Positions 6,907-31,586 of a stretch of DNA of 64,000 nucleotides are shown here, piece by piece. The stretch is from IMG/VR virus record IMGVR_UViG_3300034358_000008, positions 248,001-312,000 of that record; one strand, 5' to 3'. The notes under the pieces were generated by a model that saw nothing but the letters and a program-made list of their open reading frames with translations, ran no database searches and was not told where the DNA came from. Made by a program: the position numbers and the translations under genes. The first letter of the stretch is position 1. Each line of letters opens with the position of its first letter.

Positions 6907-7776
6907 TTAACGAAGGTAGTTAGGACGACGAACACCTTTAGCACGATCCCAATCAAGAATCTTGATCAGTTCCGATACATCACGATGCTCAGCAGACTCC
7001 AACCCAAGGCGTGTACGCTTCTGGTTATCATCTTGGATCTTCCACAGTACATCAGGGGTGATCTGACGTTCAGGGATGATCATTGCTTCTTCAGCTGTGA
7101 AGTTTTCCAGAGCAGGAGAAGTATATTTGTTAGCGGTAAAGATACCACCTTCACCTACGAAGTCCCATGTAGAGATTTCACGGGTGTACTTAATGCCACG
7201 GTATTGATCGTCCTGAGTAATAGAACGTACCGAACAGTAAGTGTTAATGCTTGGGTTATCCAGCGAGTCTTTGAAGACTTGAGCAAAAGGACCGTAAGGT
7301 TTAACTTCAGCTACAACCATCTTGACAGGCTTACCCTGCTCATTCGTACCTGGAACAATAGTCAGGTTACGGATGTGTGCACAAACGCGGTTGTCGTCGA
7401 TCTGACGAATCCGCATGAGGTACTCAGCATCAGAGAGTGGCTTACGAACAACCCGACCATCGATCATGAGATCTTGGAATGGTTCAGGGTGTTTGAACTC
7501 CATGAACAAAACGCCTTTCTTAAGACGTCTCATCAAAGAACTCGATGGTTCAAACATCGCTACGCCGGATGCTTCATCATAAAACATACCAGCGGAGTTT
7601 TGTGTACCATAGCTACCAACCACGAGGGTGTAGTAACCGTCAGCATCCGCAGGAAGGATGCCGCGTTTGTTAGTACCAGCCAACATCGCACAACCAACAG
7701 TAACTGCTGATTGCGCCAAGGCAACTTGACCAGATGGGTTAGGGATCGTTCTCCCTCGGATAAGACCTAAGTTCAT
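6907..7776 (-). CDS. prohead (head maturation) serine protease, phiKZ gp175-like / T4 gp21-related
   Basis: EFKHPE (catalytic His) and CSVRS (catalytic Ser) motifs, TWDFVGEGG, and SPALE|NF candidate autocleavage site; position downstream of vRNAP beta. Confidence 0.85.
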   Translation of the reverse strand: MNLGLIRGRTIPNPSGQVALAQSAVTVGCAMLAGTNKRGILPADADGYYTLVVGSYGTQNSAGMFYDEASGVAMFEPSSSLMRRLKKGVLFMEFKHPEPFQDLMIDGRVVRKPLSDAEYLMRIRQIDDNRVCAHIRNLTIVPGTNEQGKPVKMVVAEVKPYGPFAQVFKDSLDNPSINTYCSVRSITQDDQYRGIKYTREISTWDFVGEGGIFTANKYTSPALENFTAEEAMIIPERQITPDVLWKIQDDNQKRTRLGLESAEHRDVSELIKILDWDRAKGVRRPNYLR

Positions 7777-7789
7777 ATACCACTTCCAT

Positions 7790-8509
7790 TTAAGTGCGGA
7801 GCAGTTCTTCGATCATCTCAACCGACTCAGATTGGTTAACCAGAGCAGAGTTGATACCTTCGCTGTAATAAGCACCGTTTAGTTTAGACGTTGTATCGGA
7901 AGTGTTCCAAATAACAGAACGGAAGGGAACCGTAACAGGAGGTTTAGTCCGTAGGTCTTCCGGGCGTGCAAGGATGTGCCGATACAGCCGAGTCATATCA
8001 TTCGGATCTCGAGCAATAGTTGAAATAATCAACTCGATAATCGAACGACCACCAAGGTCAACCCCGGCGTGCTCTTTTGCTGTGTCGAACATATTCGCCA
8101 TGTCGAAGTAATCCATGTACCAAGGAATGTTACCCTTAGCAATGAACTCATCGTACATGTAGTAACTGAGGGTGTCTGTCACAACCAAAGCGGTCGTGTA
8201 GATTAACTTGTCTCCAGCTTCAAACTGGAACTCGATGTAAGGTGTTTCGTTAACTACGATCTTCTGCGTGGAGCTAGGACAGATACGCATCATTGCGATA
8301 GTCTTGTTAACAGCGTATCGGTCTCCCATGATGATCGGGAAGAAACCAAAGACAAAAACCTCACTGCCTAGGACAGCAAGGTTCTTAGCTGTAAAACTTT
8401 CGGGAATCTGTACGGTACACGGAACAGTAGTAACGACACTTCCATCGGATTCTTCTGACAAACGACTGAGTACGTAGTCTGCATCACGAATCAGATTTGG
8501 AGTGTTCAT
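7790..8509 (-). CDS. conserved head-associated protein, phiKZ gp176-like
   Basis: 239 aa, AAGGA RBS, directly upstream of protease; assignment by recalled synteny. Confidence 0.65.
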   Translation of the reverse strand: MNTPNLIRDADYVLSRLSEESDGSVVTTVPCTVQIPESFTAKNLAVLGSEVFVFGFFPIIMGDRYAVNKTIAMMRICPSSTQKIVVNETPYIEFQFEAGDKLIYTTALVVTDTLSYYMYDEFIAKGNIPWYMDYFDMANMFDTAKEHAGVDLGGRSIIELIISTIARDPNDMTRLYRHILARPEDLRTKPPVTVPFRSVIWNTSDTTSKLNGAYYSEGINSALVNQSESVEMIEELLRT

Positions 8510-8519
8510 GGGTTATCCT

Positions 8520-9743
8520 TTAATTTTTAAGCCAAACTTCGTAGGAGCTACCGTCATCTTCACGAATGGTCTTACCACTACGTTTGAATCCAGCCGACTC
8601 GAATAACTTTTGACTCTTAATGTTGTCAGGTTCAATCATAGCTCGACCGGGTTTATCTGCAAAATACTGCGCTACAAATGCCCCAGCTATACCTTGATGT
8701 TGGAATCGTTGAGTAACGAAGATTGCGCCTGTGCGGTATCGACCGTCGCCGTCCTTACGTGGTACAGCAAAACCAACGACCTCGGTCCCCTTAAAGAAAC
8801 CAGTTACGGTCTTAGTTTTACGTCCCCTAACGACATCCCCTAAAAACCTGTCCCCTTCAGACTCATCGATTAACTTAACAATCATTGGGTCATCAACAGA
8901 GATGGATTTAAAAGATACGTCACCGAAAGATTCTTGACCGAGCTTAGTCTTAAGGTCACGATGAAACTTATCAGCAGCTTGACGTTCACTGATTGTTGGT
9001 GGAAGATCCTTAACTACGTTATCAACGTGAGCTTTAAATCGATCACCTTGCGACACAGATGCGTAAGCTGTACGACGTTCACGCTCTTCAAACATCAAAG
9101 GAGAACCTTGATGAATGTCTTGCAGTCTAGCTACACGATCAGGTAAAGGCCAGTTAGGCTCAACACCCATAGCGTCACATTCACTGGTAAGGCGCTTCTC
9201 TTCAGCTTGTAGCACTAATTGAGCAGACTTAGAATTCGCAGCAGCGGCGTAAGCTTCTGCCTTGGTGAAGTAACCTTCTTTGCTGACTGTTTGCTTTGTG
9301 AGTTTACGGATCAACGCATCGTTAACTACGATAGCTAGAATAGTCTGATGACCATCTTGAGCTGCACGTACTACACGGTGATAACCATCTAAGGTAGCAA
9401 AGTTCCCCGGAGAATACTCATGGACTATAACTGGATATTTGAGATCTACTTTAGCAACGCGTTCTGCATCAACTGAAGTAGCGGGTTCAATCATCCATAC
9501 AAGTTTAGAGATAGGGAAGTTAACTGGTGTCATACCCTTAGTGACTTTCAGCAATTCATCTACCAAGTAAACTGAACCTTGGTGGGAGAATAAGCTATCT
9601 GCGCCTTCCTTGTACTCACTACCAACCTTCTGGGATTCCGTCCAAGCGGGATAAGGGAGGCCGTTCCGCCGGGCGTGTAGCCTAGCGAGACGGCGCTCAA
9701 TTTCTCCGGGACCCCAAGCTTCGTTAGAAGGTTGGCTTAGGTC
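8520..9743 (-). CDS. ParB/Srx-like domain + GNAT acetyltransferase; probable -1 frameshift extension of the 9737-11779 protein
   Basis: Frame is open from 9755 to 8520 with no ATG/GTG/TTG until TTG 9566; PVIV...LDGYHR ParB-like motif; TGAIFVTQRFQHQGIA and EPDNIKSQKLFESAGF GNAT motifs. Confidence 0.75.
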   Translation of the reverse strand, partial: DLSQPSNEAWGPGEIERRLARLHARRNGLPYPAWTESQKVGSEYKEGADSLFSHQGSVYLVDELLKVTKGMTPVNFPISKLVWMIEPATSVDAERVAKVDLKYPVIVHEYSPGNFATLDGYHRVVRAAQDGHQTILAIVVNDALIRKLTKQTVSKEGYFTKAEAYAAAANSKSAQLVLQAEEKRLTSECDAMGVEPNWPLPDRVARLQDIHQGSPLMFEERERRTAYASVSQGDRFKAHVDNVVKDLPPTISERQAADKFHRDLKTKLGQESFGDVSFKSISVDDPMIVKLIDESEGDRFLGDVVRGRKTKTVTGFFKGTEVVGFAVPRKDGDGRYRTGAIFVTQRFQHQGIAGAFVAQYFADKPGRAMIEPDNIKSQKLFESAGFKRSGKTIREDDGSSYEVWLKN

Positions 9744-9749
9744 AAAGGG
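9621..9749 (-). promoter_or_regulatory. candidate programmed -1 ribosomal frameshift signal
   Basis: C_CCT_TTG heptamer (9749-9743), 6-nt spacer ACCTAA, then GCCAACCTTCT (9736-9726) pairing with AGAAGGTTGGT (9631-9621). Confidence 0.65.
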
Positions 9750-11779
9750 GTTTCGTCATCTTCTTCAGATTCTTCATCGGTAGTTTCAGTCTCTTCGACT
9801 TCGGCTTCCTCAGATTCTTCTGCGTCAGTTGCTTCAGCGGTAGATTCGGTTTCTTCAGTTGCCTCGGTTTCGGTTTGTTCAACCTCTGTCTCAGCTTCTT
9901 CAGTTTCCTCTACTTCTTCAGCGACTTCCTCTTCGTCACCTTCGTCGGTTTCGAGATCAGCGTACGGATCTGCTTCTTCATCGCTGCCGTCACCTGTAAA
10001 GTCTTCTTCGACGTCTGTTTCCGCTTCACCAGTTTCGGCTACATCGGTTTCACCAGTAGCGTCACCGAGATCGGTATCGTCAGCAGTGCCATCAGTACCC
10101 AGATCACCAGCTGTGTCGTCCAGACCATCCCCAAGATCGGAAGTGTCATCACCCAGACCAACATCAGACAAGCCGTCATCGCCATTAACACCGGCGTCGC
10201 CGACAGTGCCTTCTTCACCGGCAATACCCAGTTCGTCGCCACCCAATCCAGCTTCGCCTTCATCTGTAGCTTCATCATCAGCAATAGCCAATAGACCGGA
10301 ATCATCGATAGGACCAGTAGCAGAACCTTCAGGATCAATCTCAGCTGAGAACATTTCAACCTTGACTTGTTTAGCCTGGAAGATAGCAACCAGAGTAATC
10401 ATCGCTTGCGTAGCCAGTTCACGAACGGTAGCCTTGGTATAAGTCTGACCAAACTGATCGATTGCATCCAGATACTCAAGGTAGGTGGATTCAGGGAAGT
10501 ACACACGGCAAACCAATGCCGAGAACACTTTGTACGGATTGTCGTAATCATCTCGACGAACGTAACGCAGTGCTTCAATCAGACCCTGTTCCATTTCTGG
10601 AGTGTAACGATCTTTCAACAGTTCACTACGACCGATTTCACGGAAAGCAGAGATAACGTTGTTCAGACGTTGACGATCAGAGTAGTCAATTGCAGCCTGT
10701 TGGATCATCGGATAGATTTCGTGCCAACGTTCAATGAACTTGTGAGCAGCAGCATTCAGATACTTAACGTCAGTAACGCCAGTGTTCTCAACAGCAGCAC
10801 CCAAGATAGCTTGAATGTCACCACCACCTACAACCCATGGATCGAATACGTCACCGTTAACAGTAACGATAGCACGACGGGTAGCGATAGGGTTGGTAGC
10901 TTCGTTCTTCAGAATCATTACACCCTGTTCACGCATGTCAGCACGACGCACGTAAGCGCGCATCAGATAGAAGCCGAACATTTCGTGCAACAGTTTCATG
11001 GTGTGTTCCCACTCTTCCAGATCAACGGAGAAGTTAGGGACGACCACTGGGTTGTCGATATAGTGACCGCAGATGAAATAAGCGACCAGCAAATCGTCAA
11101 CGTTGAACGGAGCAGCTTGTGCTGACAGGTAAGGCAAACCAGCAGGCATTACGTGACCAGTAGTGAACAAGGAGTTCCATACCAGTTCCAGTCGTGCACT
11201 ACCAACTTGCAGAGCCCACTCGGTGATCTCTTCTTGCTCAAGGTGTGGGTTGTTGACCGACATCATTTCGATAATCGATTCAGCAGTCTGACCTTCGAGT
11301 TGGAAAGACTTATAAGAGTCTTTAGGACGAACGGTGGTGTAACGAGTGTTGATGTGGTTAACCAACGTGGCACTGTTGTGTGGTGCCAGATAACGCCATG
11401 CCTTAACCGAGTACTCGGGTTGGCAAGAAGCCGATTGCATACCAGCATAAGTCTGGTGCATAGCTTTAATAGCAGGGATAATAACGTTAGTCGTGTTGAA
11501 CTGAACCTTGGCTACAGCTTGACCCAAGTTAGCAACGATCGATTCACGGGAATCATCTTCAGCTGGAGTGGTATCTTGGTTGATCGCATCGAAGTGATCT
11601 TCTACTGCTACCATCTCTTCATCAGGCAATGCAGTGTTGGTTGGTTCGTCGTCAACTTTGTAGGTATCGGCGAATACAGCCAGGGGGAACTCAGGGTTCC
11701 CCACAGTCAGTACTTTACCTTCCCGAGTCAACGTCTGGGCCGCGTCACGGACAGCGTCCATAGTTTCGGATTGGTACAT
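9737..11779 (-). CDS. head protein, phiKZ gp177-like, with ~207-aa acidic C-terminal tail
   Basis: 680 aa, AGGAG RBS; position between vRNAP beta and gp176/protease; assignment by recalled synteny. Confidence 0.7.
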   Translation of the reverse strand: MYQSETMDAVRDAAQTLTREGKVLTVGNPEFPLAVFADTYKVDDEPTNTALPDEEMVAVEDHFDAINQDTTPAEDDSRESIVANLGQAVAKVQFNTTNVIIPAIKAMHQTYAGMQSASCQPEYSVKAWRYLAPHNSATLVNHINTRYTTVRPKDSYKSFQLEGQTAESIIEMMSVNNPHLEQEEITEWALQVGSARLELVWNSLFTTGHVMPAGLPYLSAQAAPFNVDDLLVAYFICGHYIDNPVVVPNFSVDLEEWEHTMKLLHEMFGFYLMRAYVRRADMREQGVMILKNEATNPIATRRAIVTVNGDVFDPWVVGGGDIQAILGAAVENTGVTDVKYLNAAAHKFIERWHEIYPMIQQAAIDYSDRQRLNNVISAFREIGRSELLKDRYTPEMEQGLIEALRYVRRDDYDNPYKVFSALVCRVYFPESTYLEYLDAIDQFGQTYTKATVRELATQAMITLVAIFQAKQVKVEMFSAEIDPEGSATGPIDDSGLLAIADDEATDEGEAGLGGDELGIAGEEGTVGDAGVNGDDGLSDVGLGDDTSDLGDGLDDTAGDLGTDGTADDTDLGDATGETDVAETGEAETDVEEDFTGDGSDEEADPYADLETDEGDEEEVAEEVEETEEAETEVEQTETEATEETESTAEATDAEESEEAEVEETETTDEESEEDDETPLT

Positions 11780-11791
11780 GATAGCTCCTAA

Positions 11792-11989
11792 TTAGCAGTT
11801 CAGATGTTTAAGCATACGACCAACCAATGCGGCTTTAATGTCCGCAGCGGAGAGCGATTCGCCTTCGATGGTGTTGGCAGCCGATTCGGAGCCCAGGGAG
11901 CGCAGAATTGCTTCTGCACCCAGTTCAGCAGCAGCGGTCAGAACGGCAAGGTTCTGTCCGAAGACTACGTTGTTACTTTGCTTTTGCAT
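11792..11989 (-). CDS. small protein in the vRNAP/head operon
   Basis: GAGGA RBS before ATG 11989; 65 aa; overlaps the stop of the vRNAP beta gene. Confidence 0.75.
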   Translation of the reverse strand: MQKQSNNVVFGQNLAVLTAAAELGAEAILRSLGSESAANTIEGESLSAADIKAALVGRMLKHLNC

Positions 11990-14900
11990 GTTTAGTTCCT
12001 CGGTATACACCAGCAATGTGTTTGGAGAGTTGCTTCAAGAGCATGCTAGTGGTTGCGATTAGTTTCGGAGACATTACCATCCGTTCTTCTACAGACGTGT
12101 TGCCGAAGATGATGTCGATTGGAGTGTCGTCTTCAAGCTTGTTGACACCAGTCATCACACGAGAGATTACGGTCTTCATCTGGTTACACAATACAGCCTT
12201 GTCACCAGTACCGAATGGAATATCATGGTCGATGTAAATACGGATAACCATGCTATCCGGTTCCAACACTTGACCTTTAATACGGAAGGAGGAATCTACT
12301 TCACCGGAGTGAGCAGGTCGTCCTCTTTGACGTGCAGATTCAGCACGCCATTCATCAGACTTCTCTGCGAGTTTACGCAGGTTGTCAGACATGTCATCCA
12401 GATCACCGTGATAGAAACATTCGATTCGAGATACCGTACCAACTACCTTAGCGGTAGGTGTGGCAGCCGAGAGTCGCTTGAGCGTCTCAATGGAAGCTTC
12501 ATCAAACAGCGTGTTACCCGCAGTTTCAGGATCTTCAATAATACATAGAATTGAATTCAGGTCGAGGTGCTCGCCCTCTTTGACCAGATCACGGACATGT
12601 TGGTCGAACCTAACAATGACGTTCTTCACGTCAGAAGTCTGTGTGTTCAACTTAATAGCCATGGATTCAGAAACAACAGATCCGTCCTCGAGAGTATCGA
12701 GGTTGTCACTAAATACAACCACGCCAATAACCCCAGGCATCAAAGAAGCTTGAGTTGGGTTGTAGCGATCCTTCTTGAAATACTTCCGGTTGTATGAGAT
12801 TGTGTCACCGCGTTTAAATTTGTCACCTTTCTTAAGATCGGATACCAAAGCGTGCGGATACACTACACCAGCAGCAGAACCATGAATCGTGCCCAAAGGC
12901 ATCGAGTCGAGTTCACCACTTGCATACTTCACAGTTACAGCGTGCTTATCGATGGAGACAACTTCACCATCTTCATCAGCAGAGGTTGCAAAGATACTGG
13001 AAGTACGTTGAGCTACGACTTGTTCATAACCAGTACGGACTGGCGAAAGATCGTAACCATCTGCATACAAACCTTGTTGCTGTTGAATCGACGCAAAGCC
13101 GATACGCTTCATGTCGTCGTGTGCCATACCTACACCCAAGAGTGCAGAGGTAGAGAACAACTTAGACTTGGTATCAATCGATTCATCAAACACACGTGTC
13201 AAACCACGCATCGAGGTGAAGTTAGCATCAGGAGTCATGTAGGCAATGATACCTACGTCACCGGAGTCAACAGTAGACTCAGAGATAATCCCCCGATCGT
13301 TGTCACCATAAACACGAGTACGAGCAACCATCGATACAGCAGCACGACCACCCGACCCACGATAGGTCATTGCTTCTTGTTCACGCAGGTTAGCAATTGG
13401 GTTAGAGTCTTCAATAGTAGCTACAGTCGGATCGTTCAGTTCACGCCATACTTCATGACGATCGAGAACTACCTTCAGTTCAGTACTACCTTCACGACTA
13501 TTATACCGTTTTACAGCCTTAGACAGACTGCTGAAGATCTGGCCTGCAATGCGTTCGTAGCCACGATAGCGCATGTACGCACCGTCTACCTCATTAGGAG
13601 ACCAATCGGTCATGAGGAGTTCTACAGAGCGGTACAGCAACCCTTCGAAGTCAGTTGGCTCACCCATCTCTTCCAACAGACCCTTAGTGATAGGGTCCAA
13701 CCAAGCTTCGAACAGGAAATCGATCTCTTTCAAGAATCGAGCACCCATGTCTTGCTCAGCGAGGATACGGAAGTAAACATCCTTACGGTTAAAGTCATAC
13801 CGGGAATAGTTACGCAGCGACTTGTGATAACGACGTAGACCACCGAGTACCAACATGGCTTTATAGTCAGAGCGTGGGAACACCAAGACTTCATCGTTGA
13901 AAGCCAGTACCCATTCATCTTGCTGAATCACTACGCCTTTGGTACCACGAGGATAAGCCGTGTACTCAACACCGAGTTTCTCCAGCAGGTTATTGAAACC
14001 AAACTGATAACCCAGTACCAAGCCTAGAGGCAAGTCCTTACCACCCACCTTAACATCTACCGATTCCAGTGGAGCTTTGGTCATGTTCAATCCAGCGAGG
14101 TCTACGATAGTCCCCATTGGTTCAAGATCAGTCAAAGACTCTTGGAGATAGAACACACCTTGTTGGTCAACCACAACTGGAGAGTTCTGGTAAGCACCCA
14201 CCAGCACCAACCCATCCCGTTCAACATTAGCTGCTGTGATCCCGTACTTAGACTGGAAATGCTCTTCACGTTGAGGATAGTTGAAGAAGAAGTGAATGTC
14301 TCCGTTATCGAATGCGCTGAACTTAGTAGCCAGAGCAGTGTAGACTCGTGGTAACCCTTGGAATGAGGACAGATCAATTTCAGCGAACTTCGGATTGGAG
14401 ATAATAGCGTTAGACTCATCACGAGCCTTAACATCCAATTGACGAGTCAACCATTTGTCGTAGTTGTTATCAGCACGCTCCGAACGCAATACGAATGTCT
14501 TGTTCGTATAACTGGTCAACGCAACTTTCATTGGGTTAACTTTACGGATTGGAATATCAGCACGCTGAATACGTTGACGGTAAGTAACACCGTTAGACAA
14601 GAACCGACCATCCCGATCAATAACCGGAATAGTGAACTCCAAGTTACTCGATACACCACGAACAGGTTTCACTGTAACTGTGAAGGTTTGAGTGTGGTTC
14701 ATGACATCTTCATTCTCACGAATCTTAATGTCTGTAACCGATACACCTTGACGCTGGATAAACATGATGCCGTTGAGGATATCCTTAGGCAACAGAGTCT
14801 TGATGTATTTACGCATCATCGGTTTGTGAACCGACTTCAACATGGCTTTGTCCATGATAGTAGCTTTATCAGGATACGCATCCACAGGGACCGTGTAATC

Positions 14901-16415
14901 CTCATTAGCATACTGCATGGCTTCCTTAACAGTTAACCCAGAACCGAATGGGTCTGGCATTGTCTCGTAAGACATCGCTTGATCCACAGCTTGTTCAAAG
15001 CTACGTTCAGAAATCATGTTGGTCTTAGCCAAACGATACGCTCGCTTAGCAACACCGTCCAACATGTCATCGCCAGTAGAGAACTCTTCCTGCTTAGGTG
15101 CACCCGGTTTACGCTCTTCTACTTTAAGTGTCTTGGTAGCTGCCTCAGACATCTCATCGGTTTCGATGTGAAGTGTGGTGCTATCCAAATCTAACTCAGG
15201 TGGAGGAGTATAGGTGACTTGCAGAACATCAAGATCGAATGTCTTGTAGACCTTACTGAGAGGTTCAGCAACTTCCGTAACATCAATCTCTTCAACGGGT
15301 TCTTCAACAACAGCCTCTACTTCCGTATCACCGTTATCGTTCTCTTCAAGATCCTCAGTCATATCTGGTTGAGGAGCTTCAATCTCAGCTACGGCTTTCA
15401 ACAGGTTGTTAGCTTGTACGTTAGCATCGTTCTCAACGAGTGCTTGACTACCGTTAGCAAATTCAACCAGTGTGGTTACCAGACTGATGAAACGACGCTG
15501 CAATACTTCAGGTTTGAAATAAGCTTCCAGACCAAAGTCATCGATGTACGATTCAAAGCCCATTGCATAGAGAGATTCTTTGTCGTTATTCTCGAGTGCT
15601 ACCTTCTGAGCAGCCAAAGCCAACACGTCTTCTTCAATTTCTTCCTCGGTCTGTGTACGCCACTCATCGAGCTTACCAAGGTTGATAACAAAGAAGCTAC
15701 CTTGGACACGGATGAAGAAGTTAATCTGCGCTAGCGCTGCCTTAGGCACCTTAGAGATGTAACTAGACTTACGCTCCAAGCCAAGGAACCGATAAACATC
15801 AAACAGATTCAAAAGACTACCCGTATTGAACAGCTCCAAGAGGTGTTGGTTCTGGGAAGTCTCAAGTTGTTTGAACTGAGCGATGGTTGGCATCCGCTCA
15901 GGGATATGCAGTTCCATGAAATGGTTCCAGTGAGGGAACCGGTCTACAGCTTTCGCTACGCCGTCCCAAACTGTTGCAGCATTGTTACTCCAGCGGTAGT
16001 ACGTTGCCTTATAACTGGCAATGTAGCGATACAGCGGGTTGAGCATGTTGTAGTTGAACAACGCGACGTTCTGTTGATTCAAACGTACCGATTCATCACG
16101 ACGCAGTGGTTTGAAGAAACGATGTTGTTTACGGAATTCGTTCATGAGGGTGATAGGTAACACCCCTGTACGCTTAGGACTACCATCAAGGGTTTCCAAC
16201 TGAGTAAAGTGTTCAATGAACACCTTACCTTTCAGCTTAGCGATAATAGGGTCAGCTTGGCTAGGTCCCATTACCGCAGTGTTGTCATCCCAGAAGTGAT
16301 AGACGGTCTCTATCGGGAAATCAAATTTCTTAATGGCGTGCAGACGAGGAGACTGAAGCTCCCCAACCTGACGCAGACCGTAGTCTCTAAGAAACTGTAT
16401 AATTTTTAAGCGCAT
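11973..16415 (-). CDS. virion RNA polymerase beta-like subunit (phiKZ gp178-like)
   Basis: 1480 aa; beta motifs FLSNGVTY, SESTVDSGDVG, GDKAVL-x-NQMK, PIDIIF; long phage-specific N-terminal region. Confidence 0.93.
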   Translation of the reverse strand: MRLKIIQFLRDYGLRQVGELQSPRLHAIKKFDFPIETVYHFWDDNTAVMGPSQADPIIAKLKGKVFIEHFTQLETLDGSPKRTGVLPITLMNEFRKQHRFFKPLRRDESVRLNQQNVALFNYNMLNPLYRYIASYKATYYRWSNNAATVWDGVAKAVDRFPHWNHFMELHIPERMPTIAQFKQLETSQNQHLLELFNTGSLLNLFDVYRFLGLERKSSYISKVPKAALAQINFFIRVQGSFFVINLGKLDEWRTQTEEEIEEDVLALAAQKVALENNDKESLYAMGFESYIDDFGLEAYFKPEVLQRRFISLVTTLVEFANGSQALVENDANVQANNLLKAVAEIEAPQPDMTEDLEENDNGDTEVEAVVEEPVEEIDVTEVAEPLSKVYKTFDLDVLQVTYTPPPELDLDSTTLHIETDEMSEAATKTLKVEERKPGAPKQEEFSTGDDMLDGVAKRAYRLAKTNMISERSFEQAVDQAMSYETMPDPFGSGLTVKEAMQYANEDYTVPVDAYPDKATIMDKAMLKSVHKPMMRKYIKTLLPKDILNGIMFIQRQGVSVTDIKIRENEDVMNHTQTFTVTVKPVRGVSSNLEFTIPVIDRDGRFLSNGVTYRQRIQRADIPIRKVNPMKVALTSYTNKTFVLRSERADNNYDKWLTRQLDVKARDESNAIISNPKFAEIDLSSFQGLPRVYTALATKFSAFDNGDIHFFFNYPQREEHFQSKYGITAANVERDGLVLVGAYQNSPVVVDQQGVFYLQESLTDLEPMGTIVDLAGLNMTKAPLESVDVKVGGKDLPLGLVLGYQFGFNNLLEKLGVEYTAYPRGTKGVVIQQDEWVLAFNDEVLVFPRSDYKAMLVLGGLRRYHKSLRNYSRYDFNRKDVYFRILAEQDMGARFLKEIDFLFEAWLDPITKGLLEEMGEPTDFEGLLYRSVELLMTDWSPNEVDGAYMRYRGYERIAGQIFSSLSKAVKRYNSREGSTELKVVLDRHEVWRELNDPTVATIEDSNPIANLREQEAMTYRGSGGRAAVSMVARTRVYGDNDRGIISESTVDSGDVGIIAYMTPDANFTSMRGLTRVFDESIDTKSKLFSTSALLGVGMAHDDMKRIGFASIQQQQGLYADGYDLSPVRTGYEQVVAQRTSSIFATSADEDGEVVSIDKHAVTVKYASGELDSMPLGTIHGSAAGVVYPHALVSDLKKGDKFKRGDTISYNRKYFKKDRYNPTQASLMPGVIGVVVFSDNLDTLEDGSVVSESMAIKLNTQTSDVKNVIVRFDQHVRDLVKEGEHLDLNSILCIIEDPETAGNTLFDEASIETLKRLSAATPTAKVVGTVSRIECFYHGDLDDMSDNLRKLAEKSDEWRAESARQRGRPAHSGEVDSSFRIKGQVLEPDSMVIRIYIDHDIPFGTGDKAVLCNQMKTVISRVMTGVNKLEDDTPIDIIFGNTSVEERMVMSPKLIATTSMLLKQLSKHIAGVYRGTKHAKAK

Positions 16416-30126: not shown

Positions 30127-30424
30127 ACGTCCTATCCGTCGTAGTTCAGTGGTTGCCTATAAAGAAGGTGGTCATTTATTCTACGGGCGGGTTATCCGAG
30201 TTTTACCTAACGGTGATATCTTCTGGTTGTGCTGTGGACTTCATTTCCATATCACTCCAGTAGCCGACTTGCATCACTTGTCTTACAAAGGTCGCTACAA
30301 CTGGAAGAAACATTGGATTCCAATGACTAGCCTTAGGAGTCTTAAACTTCAGGCCACGCGGTACCATTATGAGTACGCTCATAACACGCCGCTCGACTAT
30401 CACCACATTCGGAGAAAGCTATGA
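30110..30424 (+). CDS. hypothetical basic protein
   Basis: 104 aa, overlaps both neighbours. Confidence 0.65.
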   Translation: MVELCKRPIRRSSVVAYKEGGHLFYGRVIRVLPNGDIFWLCCGLHFHITPVADLHHLSYKGRYNWKKHWIPMTSLRSLKLQATRYHYEYAHNTPLDYHHIRRKL

Positions 30425-30924
30425 ATATCTGTCCTACTGGTTACTGTGGTTATCCATGCATGTGTGCATCGTCTTACAACCATGTAAATGCCACAGACAC
30501 CAAAGAACTAATTGGTATCTTGAAGAAGCGTCTTACCACAATTGCTGAAGGCGTAGCTAGTAAAGATACCGGCGAAGCGATGGTCGAGTTTGCAACCAAG
30601 ACCGCTGTGATCAAAGTGATCCGTTGTGATAATGCGGTTCATCAAACAAACATCGAGTTGCACAAGTTTACCCCTAACTTGAATCCTGAGGGAATCAATG
30701 CCCTTAGTGGAATGTGTTCGATCCTAAAGGTTGGCGATACATTCAAATCTAAGGAAGGGTACGATCCAGATGCTACAGGTTGGATCAGTTACGAGATCGT
30801 CAACTATAAAGGTGAGATCTCTGTTCAGGTGGTCACTAAGTCTACAGCCTATCCCGATATGACCGCGTACATCGGCTTCGAAGATGGTCTAACCTATTAC
30901 CCAAAGGATGCACTCCCAGCATGA
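30421..30924 (+). CDS. hypothetical protein
   Basis: GGAG RBS, ATGA overlap downstream. Confidence 0.75.
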   Translation: MNICPTGYCGYPCMCASSYNHVNATDTKELIGILKKRLTTIAEGVASKDTGEAMVEFATKTAVIKVIRCDNAVHQTNIELHKFTPNLNPEGINALSGMCSILKVGDTFKSKEGYDPDATGWISYEIVNYKGEISVQVVTKSTAYPDMTAYIGFEDGLTYYPKDALPA

Positions 30925-31586
30925 ACGATATCCAAGAGATTGTAAAAGGCGCCGTTAACAATGCGGTAATGGAAGGTCTGGTTAAGCTGGTACTTAACCC
31001 ATACTTCCTGAAGATCCTCCAAGCCAGTGAGTTCAGCGCGTTGATTGATAACGTGTCGAAAGAATCGCAGGAACGAGAATTGCAATGGTTCCTCGACAAA
31101 GAGAGCGGGCCACGTCAGACAGCCGAAGAACAAGCTGCTGCTTTGCGTAGCCAGTTCGGTGAAGACGGTATGAAAGCTGTAGGTGGTCTACTGACTGGTT
31201 ATCATGAACCAATGATTCCTGAGGCTGTGGTACCGTTTAAGGTCGGCCAGAAAGTTGTGATCGAAGAACCGATTCCTAAGTTCGACCGTTACAACTTCCC
31301 ACTGCGTTCTGCTGGTTATGGTATCTGGGAAATCGGATTGAATAATCCACGGGTACGTGAAGCTGCTAATTTGTCGACTCGTGAGTTCTTCCGGGAGCAG
31401 GGTGCGATCAGTGGCTACGATGTTACTGATACAGTCATGTATTACGTATCGGACTTCGAACCATCGTCTTTTGTACATGTGCACAACGTGAGCCAAGGTA
31501 AGAACTTCCGTCTTGGCACCACCCTCGAGCAGTTCAATCAGTGGTTCAAGGCTACCTCCACTAAACTTGCTATTCTCGCTGACTGA
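30921..31586 (+). CDS. hypothetical protein
   Basis: 221 aa, ATGA overlap. Confidence 0.8.
   Translation: MNDIQEIVKGAVNNAVMEGLVKLVLNPYFLKILQASEFSALIDNVSKESQERELQWFLDKESGPRQTAEEQAAALRSQFGEDGMKAVGGLLTGYHEPMIPEAVVPFKVGQKVVIEEPIPKFDRYNFPLRSAGYGIWEIGLNNPRVREAANLSTREFFREQGAISGYDVTDTVMYYVSDFEPSSFVHVHNVSQGKNFRLGTTLEQFNQWFKATSTKLAILAD

Follow-up and report, generated by a model that had tools for sequence, protein, structure and literature searches.

How would an open reading frame with a long startless beginning, wedged between two phage head genes, be expressed, and where would its product act? The question arises in a window of 64,000 nucleotides from a giant phiKZ-like phage (positions 248,001 to 312,000 of virus record IMGVR_UViG_3300034358_000008), in which a single open frame of 411 codons plus stop, at 8520-9755 on the minus strand, ends with a stop codon at 8520-8522. 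On its upstream side lies the gene of a gp177-like head protein of 680 aa (9737-11779, minus strand; phrog_3841, E 3e-127), which we call the carrier, and on its downstream side that of a gp176-like virion structural protein (7790-8509, minus strand; phrog_2926, E 4.9e-90), which fixes the syntenic slot. The original prediction had placed the frame between these two genes, and both profile matches bear this out. The same strand also encodes a head maturation protease, a Peptidase_S80 of the phiKZ gp175 type (6907-7776; PF20034, E 7.7e-90; phrog_3014, E 5.7e-86). The frame between the head genes, here termed the cargo frame, comprises, in order, a leader, a ParB/Srx module, a middle module and a GNAT module.

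A startless frame behind a head-protein gene

The 3' end of the carrier gene reads C_CCT_TTG ACC TAA, where the heptamer (9743-9749, minus strand; read from the sequence) fits the X_XXY_YYZ pattern and is our proposed −1 slippery site. It stands in the carrier (0) frame, within the overlap of both frames, one sense codon before the carrier stop TAA (9737-9739, minus strand). The cargo frame is −1 relative to the carrier and opens just upstream of the heptamer, from 9755; its first canonical start (ATG, GTG or TTG) is the TTG at 9566, codon 63 counting from 0. In a genome-wide scan no other −1 overlapping ORF had so long a startless run.

Called mechanically, the ORF spans 8520-9566 and starts at a TTG, and in the relatives, too, gene callers have placed an ATG or TTG start inside the frame, as would be expected of an ordinary stand-alone gene read from TTG 9566 (348 aa) or from a later ATG, with a product that is not in the virion. 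We regard this as very improbable, however. The TTG at 9566 has no proper Shine-Dalgarno sequence, in contrast to the neighbouring genes, and a start there would lose about 17 conserved ParB/Srx residues, namely the YxEGxxSxFxH motif and a β-hairpin; that the hairpin would be removed follows from the stand-alone members of the ParB family, which start 3-10 aa ahead of YxEGxxSTFTH. Moreover, the 63 codons upstream of the TTG are conserved as protein, and one related locus (L014) has no canonical start before codon 86. "Independent late expression", which the original prediction offered beside a frameshift, is thus unlikely: the canonical starts available would all truncate the ParB/Srx domain, and none of them has a ribosome-binding site.

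Related loci were reached through the gp176-like (fetched L014-L016) and gp177-like neighbours and a representative library; a search for them with the cargo protein as query gave no matches. The 13 loci include the isolates 201phi2-1, PhiPA3, Phabio and Viktualia, plus eight other independent assemblies. At carrier identities down to 52%, the carrier ends in (A/G)CC CCT TT(G/A) NNN TAA in 13/13; the heptamer CCCTTT(G/A) is unchanged, and the codon after it drifts (ACC, GCG, AAC, GTG, GCT, GCC or ACA). A startless −1 peptide is present in all of them, in a frame that opens 4-15 codons ahead of the carrier stop. In phiKZ, PS119XW and L023 the heptamer and the ORF are both absent. As the virus record behind the window is metagenome-derived, one might also consider that the gene is a remnant in decay, or that its start codon was lost through an assembly error, but the same arrangement recurs in the four sequenced isolates and the eight independent assemblies, where the cargo frames, 116-507 codons long, are all intact and under purifying selection, and this explanation is in practice refuted.

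The leader proper (9615-9743, minus strand; aa 1-43 of the translated product P0001) carries an S-N-E|AW site near the junction (9720-9728), an E(I/L)xRRLxRL motif and a G-S-E|Y site. Over the 31 codons past the heptamer pN/pS is 0.42 in the cargo frame, the two remaining frames giving 1.35 and 1.59, and leader differences fall on the three codon positions as 133/86/214. Judging from these comparisons, the −1 peptide of the related loci evolves as coding sequence.

A second case is provided by phages D6, RVTF4 and Psa21, in which the same ParB module lies in the −1 frame behind an internal-head-protein gene. The junctions read G_GGA_AAG TAA in D6, C_CCA_AAG TAA in RVTF4 and A_GCA_AAG TAA, an imperfect heptamer, in Psa21. 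In this group the conserved motif is found upstream of the annotated ATG, codon differences in that region are 23 synonymous versus 8 non-synonymous, and an S-x-E immediately precedes the ParB module in 3/3.

These comparisons also bear on the possibility that no frameshift takes place, and that the cargo is a separate protein made from a non-canonical start, or by termination-reinitiation at the carrier stop, with its S-x-E leader serving as a capsid-targeting propeptide of the T4 kind that the protease would take off. The short leader does end in a protease motif, resembling the targeting peptides of T4 internal proteins, the carrier stop falls within the overlap, and some leaders contain near-cognate ATT or ATA codons. 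Nevertheless, no near-cognate codon occupies a conserved position across the 13 loci, a conserved P-F is encoded across the heptamer, upstream of every candidate start, and X_XXY_YYZ is kept in two unrelated contexts. Reinitiation also fails to explain the compensating heptamer change between D6 (G_GGA_AAG) and RVTF4 (C_CCA_AAG), and overall we consider a separate start improbable. Transcriptional slippage on CCCCTTT would yield the same fusion as ribosomal frameshifting, but such runs are short, and we deem it unlikely.

We found no convincing stimulatory RNA structure at the junction: RNAalifold and single folds gave weak hairpins that resembled those of shuffled sequences, PhiPA3 being exceptional in having a distal hairpin. 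A small conserved hairpin lies 7 nt 3' of the heptamer, with a stability no greater than that of shuffles, and its conservation may merely mirror the encoded S-x-E-A-W. A stop codon close to the heptamer and GAGGA-like runs upstream are present at the junction. To our knowledge, C_CCU_UUR is not one of the best-studied bacterial heptamers. Between carrier and cargo, a scan for sigma-70 promoters and terminators gave no useful information; these phages transcribe with RNA polymerases of their own.

Taken together, the startless cargo ORF is most likely made by −1 ribosomal frameshifting at the end of the head-protein gene. The frameshift that the original prediction had named in passing thereby gains support from 13 loci, in which the X_XXY_YYZ heptamer is conserved and the −1 frame is startless, conserved and shows a coding signature. 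In the papers covered by our literature searches, we found no description of a frameshift at this junction.

The DNA polymerase gene is also followed by a similar heptamer-plus-stop design, and its protein is not known in the virion. Frameshifting in these phages is therefore by itself no sign of capsid loading.

The modules of the cargo

The prediction had called a ParB/Srx-like domain from YPVIV and LDGYHR, a C-terminal GNAT from FVTQRFQHQGIA and DNIKSQKLFESAGF, and a linker with VGSE|Y, VSKE|GYF and LGQE|SF at domain edges. All of these strings are found in the translation of 8520-9743 (minus strand).

The ParB/Srx module (9285-9614, minus strand; aa 44-153; phrog_17560, E 4e-20) carries the motifs YxEGxxSxFxH, W, P(V/I)IV and DG-x-HR and has no helix-turn-helix. 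Its W, P, D, G, H and R are invariant across 61-63 family members, as is the phosphate-binding-loop motif D-G-x-H-R, of the GxxR / GCHR type, which in the window reads LDGYHR. Pfam gave no match for the single module and no significant ParB match for the 63 family members; a profile of 61 family sequences, in turn, matches SbnI (E 2e-6) and the ParB structure 4umk (E 0.16). The AlphaFold model (pLDDT 81) has fold matches to ParB/Srx proteins only, namely Noc, sulfiredoxin, ParB-CDP, KorB, SbnI and free serine kinase (Foldseek probability 1.0, Z 5.5-7.2). Membership in the ParB/Srx superfamily, which upholds the first of the predicted domain calls, thus rests on a profile-to-PDB search and on the modelled fold.

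The "DNA-binding" part of that call, by contrast, is unsupported: all that is present is the nucleotide-binding ParB/Srx N-domain of about 110 aa, and the fold matches to ParB, Noc and KorB are restricted to their N-domains. With this size and coverage, with a leader and a middle module as its flanks in place of helix-turn-helix and dimerisation domains, and with no adjacent ParA gene, the module is not a chromosome or plasmid partition protein, and the name ParB should be avoided for it. It is more probably a nucleotide-dependent enzyme of the NTPase, nuclease or kinase type. An origin from an intron, intein or homing endonuclease was also considered, prompted by tblastn matches under "RNA polymerase" features, and was dropped because the module in phage RP12 is the in-frame C-terminus of an RNA-polymerase subunit.

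The stretch between the ParB/Srx and GNAT modules, described in the prediction as a linker, turns out to be an ancestral conserved cargo module of about 115 aa (8931-9275, minus strand; aa 157-271) with S-K-E|GYF and G-Q-E|SF at its edges. By tblastn it is homologous to small ORFs in the same slot of 201phi2-1 (gp270), Phabio (PHABIO_260) and Viktualia. No family or function was found for it, and an Atlas search was without result. The GenBank entry of 201phi2-1 gp270 has no mass-spectrometry note; those of gp268, gp269 and gp271 have one.

For the GNAT module (8523-8930, minus strand; aa 272-407) the single sequence matches three Pfam GNAT families just below their cut-offs (E 3e-4 to 2e-3; 21.1 versus 23.6 bits, 21.2 versus 27 and 19.1 versus 20.7). 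The assignment is carried by a family profile that matches 133 solved GNATs (best E 1e-6) and by a model (pLDDT 92.4) with 193 PDB matches at E ≤ 1e-3, those listed being all GNATs, led by Ard1/Naa, NatC and RimI (E 4e-6, TM 0.6-0.69); the C-terminal GNAT call was therefore correct. Motif A, the acetyl-CoA pyrophosphate-binding loop (Q/R-x-x-G-x-G/A), reads Q-H-Q-G-I-A, the family consensus being R-G-K-G-I-A. Since the closest proteins are the protein N-terminal acetyltransferases Ard1, NatC and RimI, the likeliest substrate of the predicted enzyme is a protein.

Cargo composition differs from locus to locus: the middle module may stand alone, or be found with or without ParB, with or without GNAT, or with other C-terminal domains, and in sequence terms the slot behaves as a cassette around the middle module.

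Candidate cleavage motifs at the module borders

The carrier is 42% identical to PHIKZ177 and 69% identical to 201phi2-1 gp271, and its C-terminal tail is long, acidic and D/E/T-rich, ending in ...ETPLT*. The head protease cuts its phiKZ homolog, gp177 (PMC5694885), and for carrier homologs the cleavage sites AVE-61 and SVE-60 as well as injection are on record (PMC5694885, PMC10449902); in the window, the N-terminal A58-V59-E60 corresponds to the site reported for 201phi2-1 gp271. The Peptidase_S80 at 6907-7776 is the predicted enzyme for S/A/G-x-E sites.

The claim that such motifs mark domain edges stood as regards their placement and their conservation in most relatives, and not as regards their number, which is at chance. 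The cargo product has eight S/A/G-x-E motifs, as compared to 6.5 ± 2.2 in shuffles (P = 0.32), and one is found at each of the four module edges (SNE|AW, GSE|Y, SKE|GYF and GQE|SF), an arrangement with P of about 4e-4 for windows chosen post hoc. The site past the frameshift is kept in 7/7 aligned sequences and, as S-x-E|A(W/F), in 12/13 loci, PhiPA3 having S-T-E|TF. Past the ParB module a motif is likewise kept in 7/7 aligned sequences. Ahead of the ParB module it is found in 4/6 ParB-bearing loci (3/4 in the alignment), being missing in L032 and L033, and ahead of the C-terminal cargo in 5/6, being missing in P0005.

Proposed delivery into the host, or function inside the capsid

The explanation that would best account for the locus, and that we hold to be more probable than not, is that the modules are fused to gp177 by frameshifting, packaged into the head, cleaved at their borders and ejected with the DNA. 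The cargo ORF would then be a −1 extension of the gp177-like head-protein gene rather than an independent gene. A fraction of ribosomes, to go by the comparative evidence, would slip back one base on C_CCU_UUG near the carrier stop, giving gp177 fused to the leader, the ParB/Srx module, the middle module and GNAT. The gp177 part would carry this fusion into the prohead, where Peptidase_S80 may cut after S/A/G-x-E at the SNE|AW, GSE|Y, SKE|GYF and GQE|SF borders, and the freed, low-copy modules would leave the capsid together with the DNA, by analogy with phiKZ gp177. Packaging, cleavage, injection and targets of the cargo are all steps that we infer.

It is also conceivable that the fusion is made, packaged and perhaps cleaved, and that the modules act within the prohead or capsid and not in the host, for example by acetylating head or inner-body proteins, or by binding nucleotides or DNA as the genome is packaged. 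What speaks for the frameshift and the border motifs fits this equally well, nothing that we computed tells where the modules act, and proteins associated with DNA or CTP are among those with the ParB/Srx fold. However, the contexts in which relatives of the modules are found argue for an intracellular role. The same ParB-type family is present in stand-alone form outside head genes, with tRNA genes as neighbours in Erwinia phages and with nucleotide-metabolism genes around it in Xoo-sp14. Relatives of the modules also occur in large proteins with ART-PolyVal, with MuF plus a single-subunit RNA polymerase, or with LigD_N; in RP12 the fusion partner is an RNA-polymerase subunit, and in PA5oct it is a protein annotated as "structural protein" with an ESI-MS/MS note. 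Such company fits the repertoire of injected "polyvalent proteins" (PMC5512222), and the polyvalent-type contexts with ADP-ribosyltransferase or RNA polymerase domains likewise point to the inside of the cell. Since phiKZ gp177 moreover leaves the capsid and is injected into the host (PMC10449902), we consider a function confined to the capsid unlikely.

Whether ejection of frameshift-fused modules extends beyond the window is a question on which we see the evidence as evenly balanced. There may be a general "frameshift-and-cleave" cargo slot for interchangeable enzyme modules in one nucleus-forming jumbo-phage clade (201phi2-1, PhiPA3, Phabio and relatives), with prohead-protease sites on either side of each module. 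The number of copies per capsid would then follow from the frameshift efficiency, and the protease would free the modules for delivery with the DNA. In that case 201phi2-1 gp270 and PHABIO_260, annotated as short hypothetical genes, and an unannotated PhiPA3 ORF would be parts of the system, and the same trick would have been used again on the internal-head-protein genes of the D6 group.

PhiKZ-like phages rely on capsid-delivered proteins in the first minutes of infection, before the nucleus exists. If delivery by frameshift fusion is true, enzymes could join the delivered set without evolving a targeting signal, by being hung on an ejected protein through a frameshift and then cut loose, and the annotation of the model phages 201phi2-1, PhiPA3 and Phabio would need correcting. 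Two candidate early effectors can be named, an Ard1/RimI-like acetyltransferase and a ParB/Srx-type enzyme, and cultured laboratory phages, with proteomic and injection assays that already exist, would allow a direct test of the proposal. A natural way to load foreign proteins into the capsids of jumbo phages is suggested as well.

Comparison with known systems

The use of −1 frameshifting near the 3′ end of a gene is familiar from T7/T3 gene 10A/10B and from Ig-like and other C-terminal extensions of phage structural proteins. As in 10A/10B, where a slippery site near the stop of the capsid gene yields a minor, C-terminally extended form that co-assembles with the major one, the proposed site lies close to the carrier stop. 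In contrast to 10A/10B, the extension here consists of enzyme modules, up to about 500 codons, that differ between close relatives; it is flanked by protease motifs, so that release rather than display would be expected; and, in place of a shell protein, an ejected protein of the head interior serves as carrier. The G/GT tail-chaperone frameshift of phage lambda uses G_GGA_AAG, and phage D6 has the identical heptamer beside a stop codon, reaching a ParB module; the gene class and the purpose are nevertheless different, and the window itself has C_CCT_TTG.

Capsid-targeted, protease-processed internal proteins are represented by T4 IPI-III and Alt. In phiKZ and 201phi2-1, inner-body and head proteins are cut after S/A/G-x-E and injected (PMC5694885, PMC10449902), and the window shares with these phages a protease of the same family two genes away, the same cleavage motif and a carrier whose homolog is cleaved and injected. 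Unlike known cargo proteins, each of which comes from a separate gene with its own start and N-terminal propeptide, the cargo here is startless and would be carried, by way of a frameshift, at the C-terminal end of a different head protein.

In terms of domain content the closest likeness is to the polyvalent proteins (Iyer et al. 2017, PMC5512222), injected multi-domain effectors, encoded by phages and by conjugative elements, which bring together ParB/Srx-superfamily domains, RimI-like GNATs, ADP-ribosyltransferases, MuF and virion RNA polymerases. Here, too, several unrelated effector domains (three modules) are encoded between head genes, and relatives of the ParB and GNAT modules occur in such architectures. 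The cargo protein of the window differs from them in being small, with three modules and neither a metallopeptidase nor a MuF domain, in its predicted joining by frameshift to a phiKZ-type head protein, and in having candidate protease sites between its modules.

Organization of the cargo ORF

The IMG/VR record holding the window is 324,912 bp long and derives from a phiKZ-like jumbo phage. On the minus strand of the window, the cargo ORF (open from 9755 to a stop codon at 8520-8522) lies between a gp177-like head-protein gene, hereafter the carrier (9737-11779, phrog_3841), and a gp176-like structural gene (7790-8509, phrog_2926). The same strand encodes a Peptidase_S80 head maturation protease (6907-7776) and the virion RNA polymerase β subunit (11973-16415), the latter separated from the carrier by a 74-aa ORF. 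All sequence strings quoted in the original prediction are present in P0001, the translation of 8520-9743 (−). This protein consists of three modules, each with its own set of relatives. HMMER, run exhaustively against 1.8 billion representatives, returned 473 matches.

The first module (residues ~44-153, phrog_17560) has homologs in Pseudomonas phages D6, RVTF4 and Psa21, in Erwinia phages, and in Xoo-sp14, PA5oct and RP12. As a single sequence it had no match in Pfam, while a 61-sequence profile detected SbnI, a ParB/Srx-fold kinase (E 2e-6), and ParB (4umk, E 0.16). Its AlphaFold model (pLDDT 81) matches ParB/Srx members only, namely Noc, sulfiredoxin, ParB-CDP, KorB, PadC, SbnI and free serine kinase, and a D-G-x-H-R motif, one Trp and one Pro are invariant in the family. 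The ParB-type fold originally proposed is therefore borne out by profile and model, but the module represents the nucleotide-binding N-domain alone; it lacks a helix-turn-helix and so does not qualify as a partition protein, and the proposed DNA binding is unsupported. The genome encodes a second, stand-alone ParB-type paralog of 113 aa with an ordinary ATG start (G000:C1:35540-35881 (+), L013 1450-1791), which shares 32% identity with the module.

The middle module (residues ~157-271) matches the small ORF found at the equivalent position in Phabio, 201phi2-1 and Viktualia, and a search for a known family recognised none. The third module (residues ~272-407) resembles small GNATs of phages, for instance gp263 of Burkholderia phage FLC9. 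Three Pfam GNAT families fell each marginally below the cut-off, yet the predicted GNAT assignment holds: the family profile matches 133 solved GNATs, the model (pLDDT 92.4) is closest to the protein N-terminal acetyltransferases Ard1, Naa30 and RimI, and motif A is present as Q-H-Q-G-I-A.

A putative −1 frameshift at the end of the carrier

The carrier ends in GAA ACC CCT TTG ACC TAA, and the cargo frame, which is −1 relative to it, opens five codons upstream of the carrier stop; C_CCT_TTG is therefore an in-frame X_XXY_YYZ heptamer inside a short overlap. Using neighbouring genes and exact look-up of metagenomic homologs to obtain relatives, we observed the same arrangement in twelve further loci: the isolates 201phi2-1, PhiPA3, Phabio and Viktualia, the IMG/VR contigs L014 and L016, and L027, L029, L030, L032, L033 and L034. 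In all twelve the carrier ends (A/G)CC CCT TT(G/A) NNN TAA, the −1 frame opens 4-15 codons upstream of the stop, and the −1 peptide reads PFxLSQxSxE-AW…E(I/L)xRRLxRL; no canonical start precedes its conserved part. 201phi2-1 gp270 and PHABIO_260 are annotated from an internal ATG ~37 codons into the frame. The PhiPA3 counterpart of gp270, a conserved 117-codon −1 ORF (L025 4252-4605) between gp208 and gp207, falls in an unannotated RefSeq gap. In phiKZ, PS119XW and the distant L023, heptamer and ORF are both absent.

In the 31 codons that follow the heptamer, the proposed frame has a pN/pS of 0.42, whereas the two alternative frames give 1.35 and 1.59; counted by codon position, the differences are 133/86/214. 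The first ATG, GTG or TTG of the cargo frame is TTG 9566, at codon 63 counting from 0, and a whole-genome scan of −1 overlapping ORFs showed this startless run to be by far the longest. ParB-type homology begins ~17 residues upstream of that TTG. Stand-alone members of the family begin 3-10 residues ahead of a conserved YxEGxxSTFTH, which in the window precedes TTG 9566 and is modelled as a β-hairpin. Neighbouring genes carry AGGA or GGAG 6-9 nt upstream of ATG; before TTG 9566 there is just AAGG, at −14, and ATG 9533 has AAGGG one base away. The frameshift suggested originally is thus backed by the retained heptamer, the startless −1 frame and the coding signature, and by subjective judgement we regard its occurrence at the carrier end as probable. 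Against this reading counts the fact that no convincing stimulatory RNA structure was seen around the site. The last ~190 residues of the carrier (9737 to about 10300, −) make up a low-complexity, extremely acidic D/E/T/G tail that varies freely among relatives, save for a final …(T/A)PLx overlapping the heptamer; speculatively, ribosomes might be slowed by an acidic run followed by Pro that directly precedes the slip site.

Similar junctions elsewhere

An independent second case is found in D6 (L001 4986-5378), RVTF4 (L004 2968-3324) and Psa21 (L005 2977-3318), where the same ParB-type module follows an internal-head-protein gene (phrog_8282/6807) in the −1 frame. The upstream genes end G_GGA_AAG TAA, C_CCA_AAG TAA and A_GCA_AAG TAA, respectively, so that the D6 and RVTF4 heptamers differ in sequence while both keep the slippery pattern. 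Because the annotated ATG comes after a conserved AY(S/T)EGPDSTFTH, these module genes are probably annotated too short. Across the 17 codons from heptamer to ATG there are 23 synonymous vs 8 non-synonymous codon differences, and third positions account for 31/41 base differences.

A further apparent −1 frameshift, also conserved, lies outside the window (G000:C1:146508-148984 (−), L037), at the end of the DNA polymerase gene (phrog_3011). This gene ends GTC CCA AAG TAA, i.e. C_CCA_AAG plus stop, and is followed by a −1 ORF of 127 codons, matched almost end to end by phrog_9995, with its first canonical start at codon 30. In the same comparison, which also includes 201phi2-1 (L039), phiKZ gp82 (L038) ends AAC CCA AAG TAA and its −1 ORF of 126 codons is startless until codon 88, annotated PHIKZ082.1 being merely the last 38 aa. 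By tblastn the phrog_9995 ORF was found in 83 phage records; among the matches listed, most coincide with two annotated features, DNA polymerase being one of these where named. A 2026 preprint on the split DNA polymerase of phiKZ does not mention this frameshift. Since a heptamer plus stop also follows a DNA polymerase gene, frameshifting alone is not evidence for capsid loading. Within the window, 30421-31586 (+) holds a 167-aa ORF that likewise has an in-frame C_CCA_AAG, inside a 27-codon overlap with a 246-codon −1 ORF; here a canonical start is found just where the overlap ends, and ordinary overlapping genes therefore suffice as explanation.

Head-protease motifs and the proposed fate of the putative fusion

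The homologs of the carrier in phiKZ (gp177) and 201phi2-1 (gp271) are head proteins processed by the protease at SVE-60 and AVE-61, respectively (PMC5694885), and gp177 injection into translation-blocked cells has been demonstrated (PMC10449902). The carrier in the window retains A58-V59-E60.

The protease motifs originally noted at domain edges are unremarkable in total number (8 S/A/G-x-E in P0001 vs 6.5 ± 2.2 by chance), but their placement stands: each of the four module edges carries one (P about 4e-4, the windows having been picked post hoc), and these positions are kept in most relatives. S-x-E|A(W/F) follows the putative frameshift site in 7/7 aligned sequences (S-T-E|TF in PhiPA3), and T(L/V)(S/G)xE|G(Y/F), consistent with the LSxE refinement reported for phiKZ, follows the ParB module in 7/7. 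G-x-E|Y precedes that module in 4/6 ParB-bearing loci, and GQE|SF or (A/S)ME|KF precedes the C-terminal cargo in 5/6; that two of the four border sites are not universal weakens the reading. The D6 group has S-x-E immediately before the ParB module (3/3), where cleavage would leave an N-terminus like that of stand-alone family members.

The best-supported reading is that a −1 frameshift would yield gp177 followed by a leader and the ParB/Srx, middle and GNAT modules, that the gp177 part would carry the fusion into the prohead, and that the S80 protease would cut it at the module borders, freeing modules to leave with the DNA. Judging subjectively rather than by computation, we find packaging and cleavage of the fusion reasonably plausible, whereas delivery of the modules and action on host targets is a more tentative proposition. 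The 201phi2-1 record has no mass-spectrometry note for gp270, which counts against the reading.

Cargo variation and comparison with known systems

Cargo make-up varies among close relatives. 201phi2-1, Viktualia, Phabio, PhiPA3 and L016 have the middle module only, L027 and L033 ParB plus middle, L029 and L034 middle plus GNAT, and L014, L030 and L032 ParB plus middle with other C-terminal domains; ParB, middle and GNAT together occur in the window only. Among metagenomic representatives, P0020 (254 aa) has GNAT before ParB, the reverse of the window, and P0007 and P0012 are tandem GNAT-GNAT proteins. In RP12, an RNA-polymerase subunit (ORF042, phrog_2986, L010 1330-3324) whose gene adjoins a gp178-like gene ends in frame with the phrog_17560 module. 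PA5oct gp140 (249 aa, L009 2602-3351), annotated as 'structural protein' with an ESI-MS/MS note, carries the module as an in-frame C-terminus.

None of the papers searched describes the frameshift proposed here. Each part is already known: capsid proteins extended by a −1 frameshift, ejected head proteins released by a protease, and effector modules of the ParB and GNAT types; to our knowledge, a slot on an injected head protein that combines them and accepts exchangeable cargo has not been described.

Large proteins, too, contain the enzyme modules, together with ART-PolyVal, with MuF plus single-subunit RNA polymerase, or with LigD_N; P0020, P0007, P0012, P0132 and P0146 include a MuF, ParB and single-subunit RNA polymerase protein of 1518 aa and an ART-PolyVal plus ParB protein of 903 aa. 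These domain associations are those described for polyvalent proteins that are injected, a set in which ParB/Srx domains and RimI-like GNATs both appear (PMC5512222).
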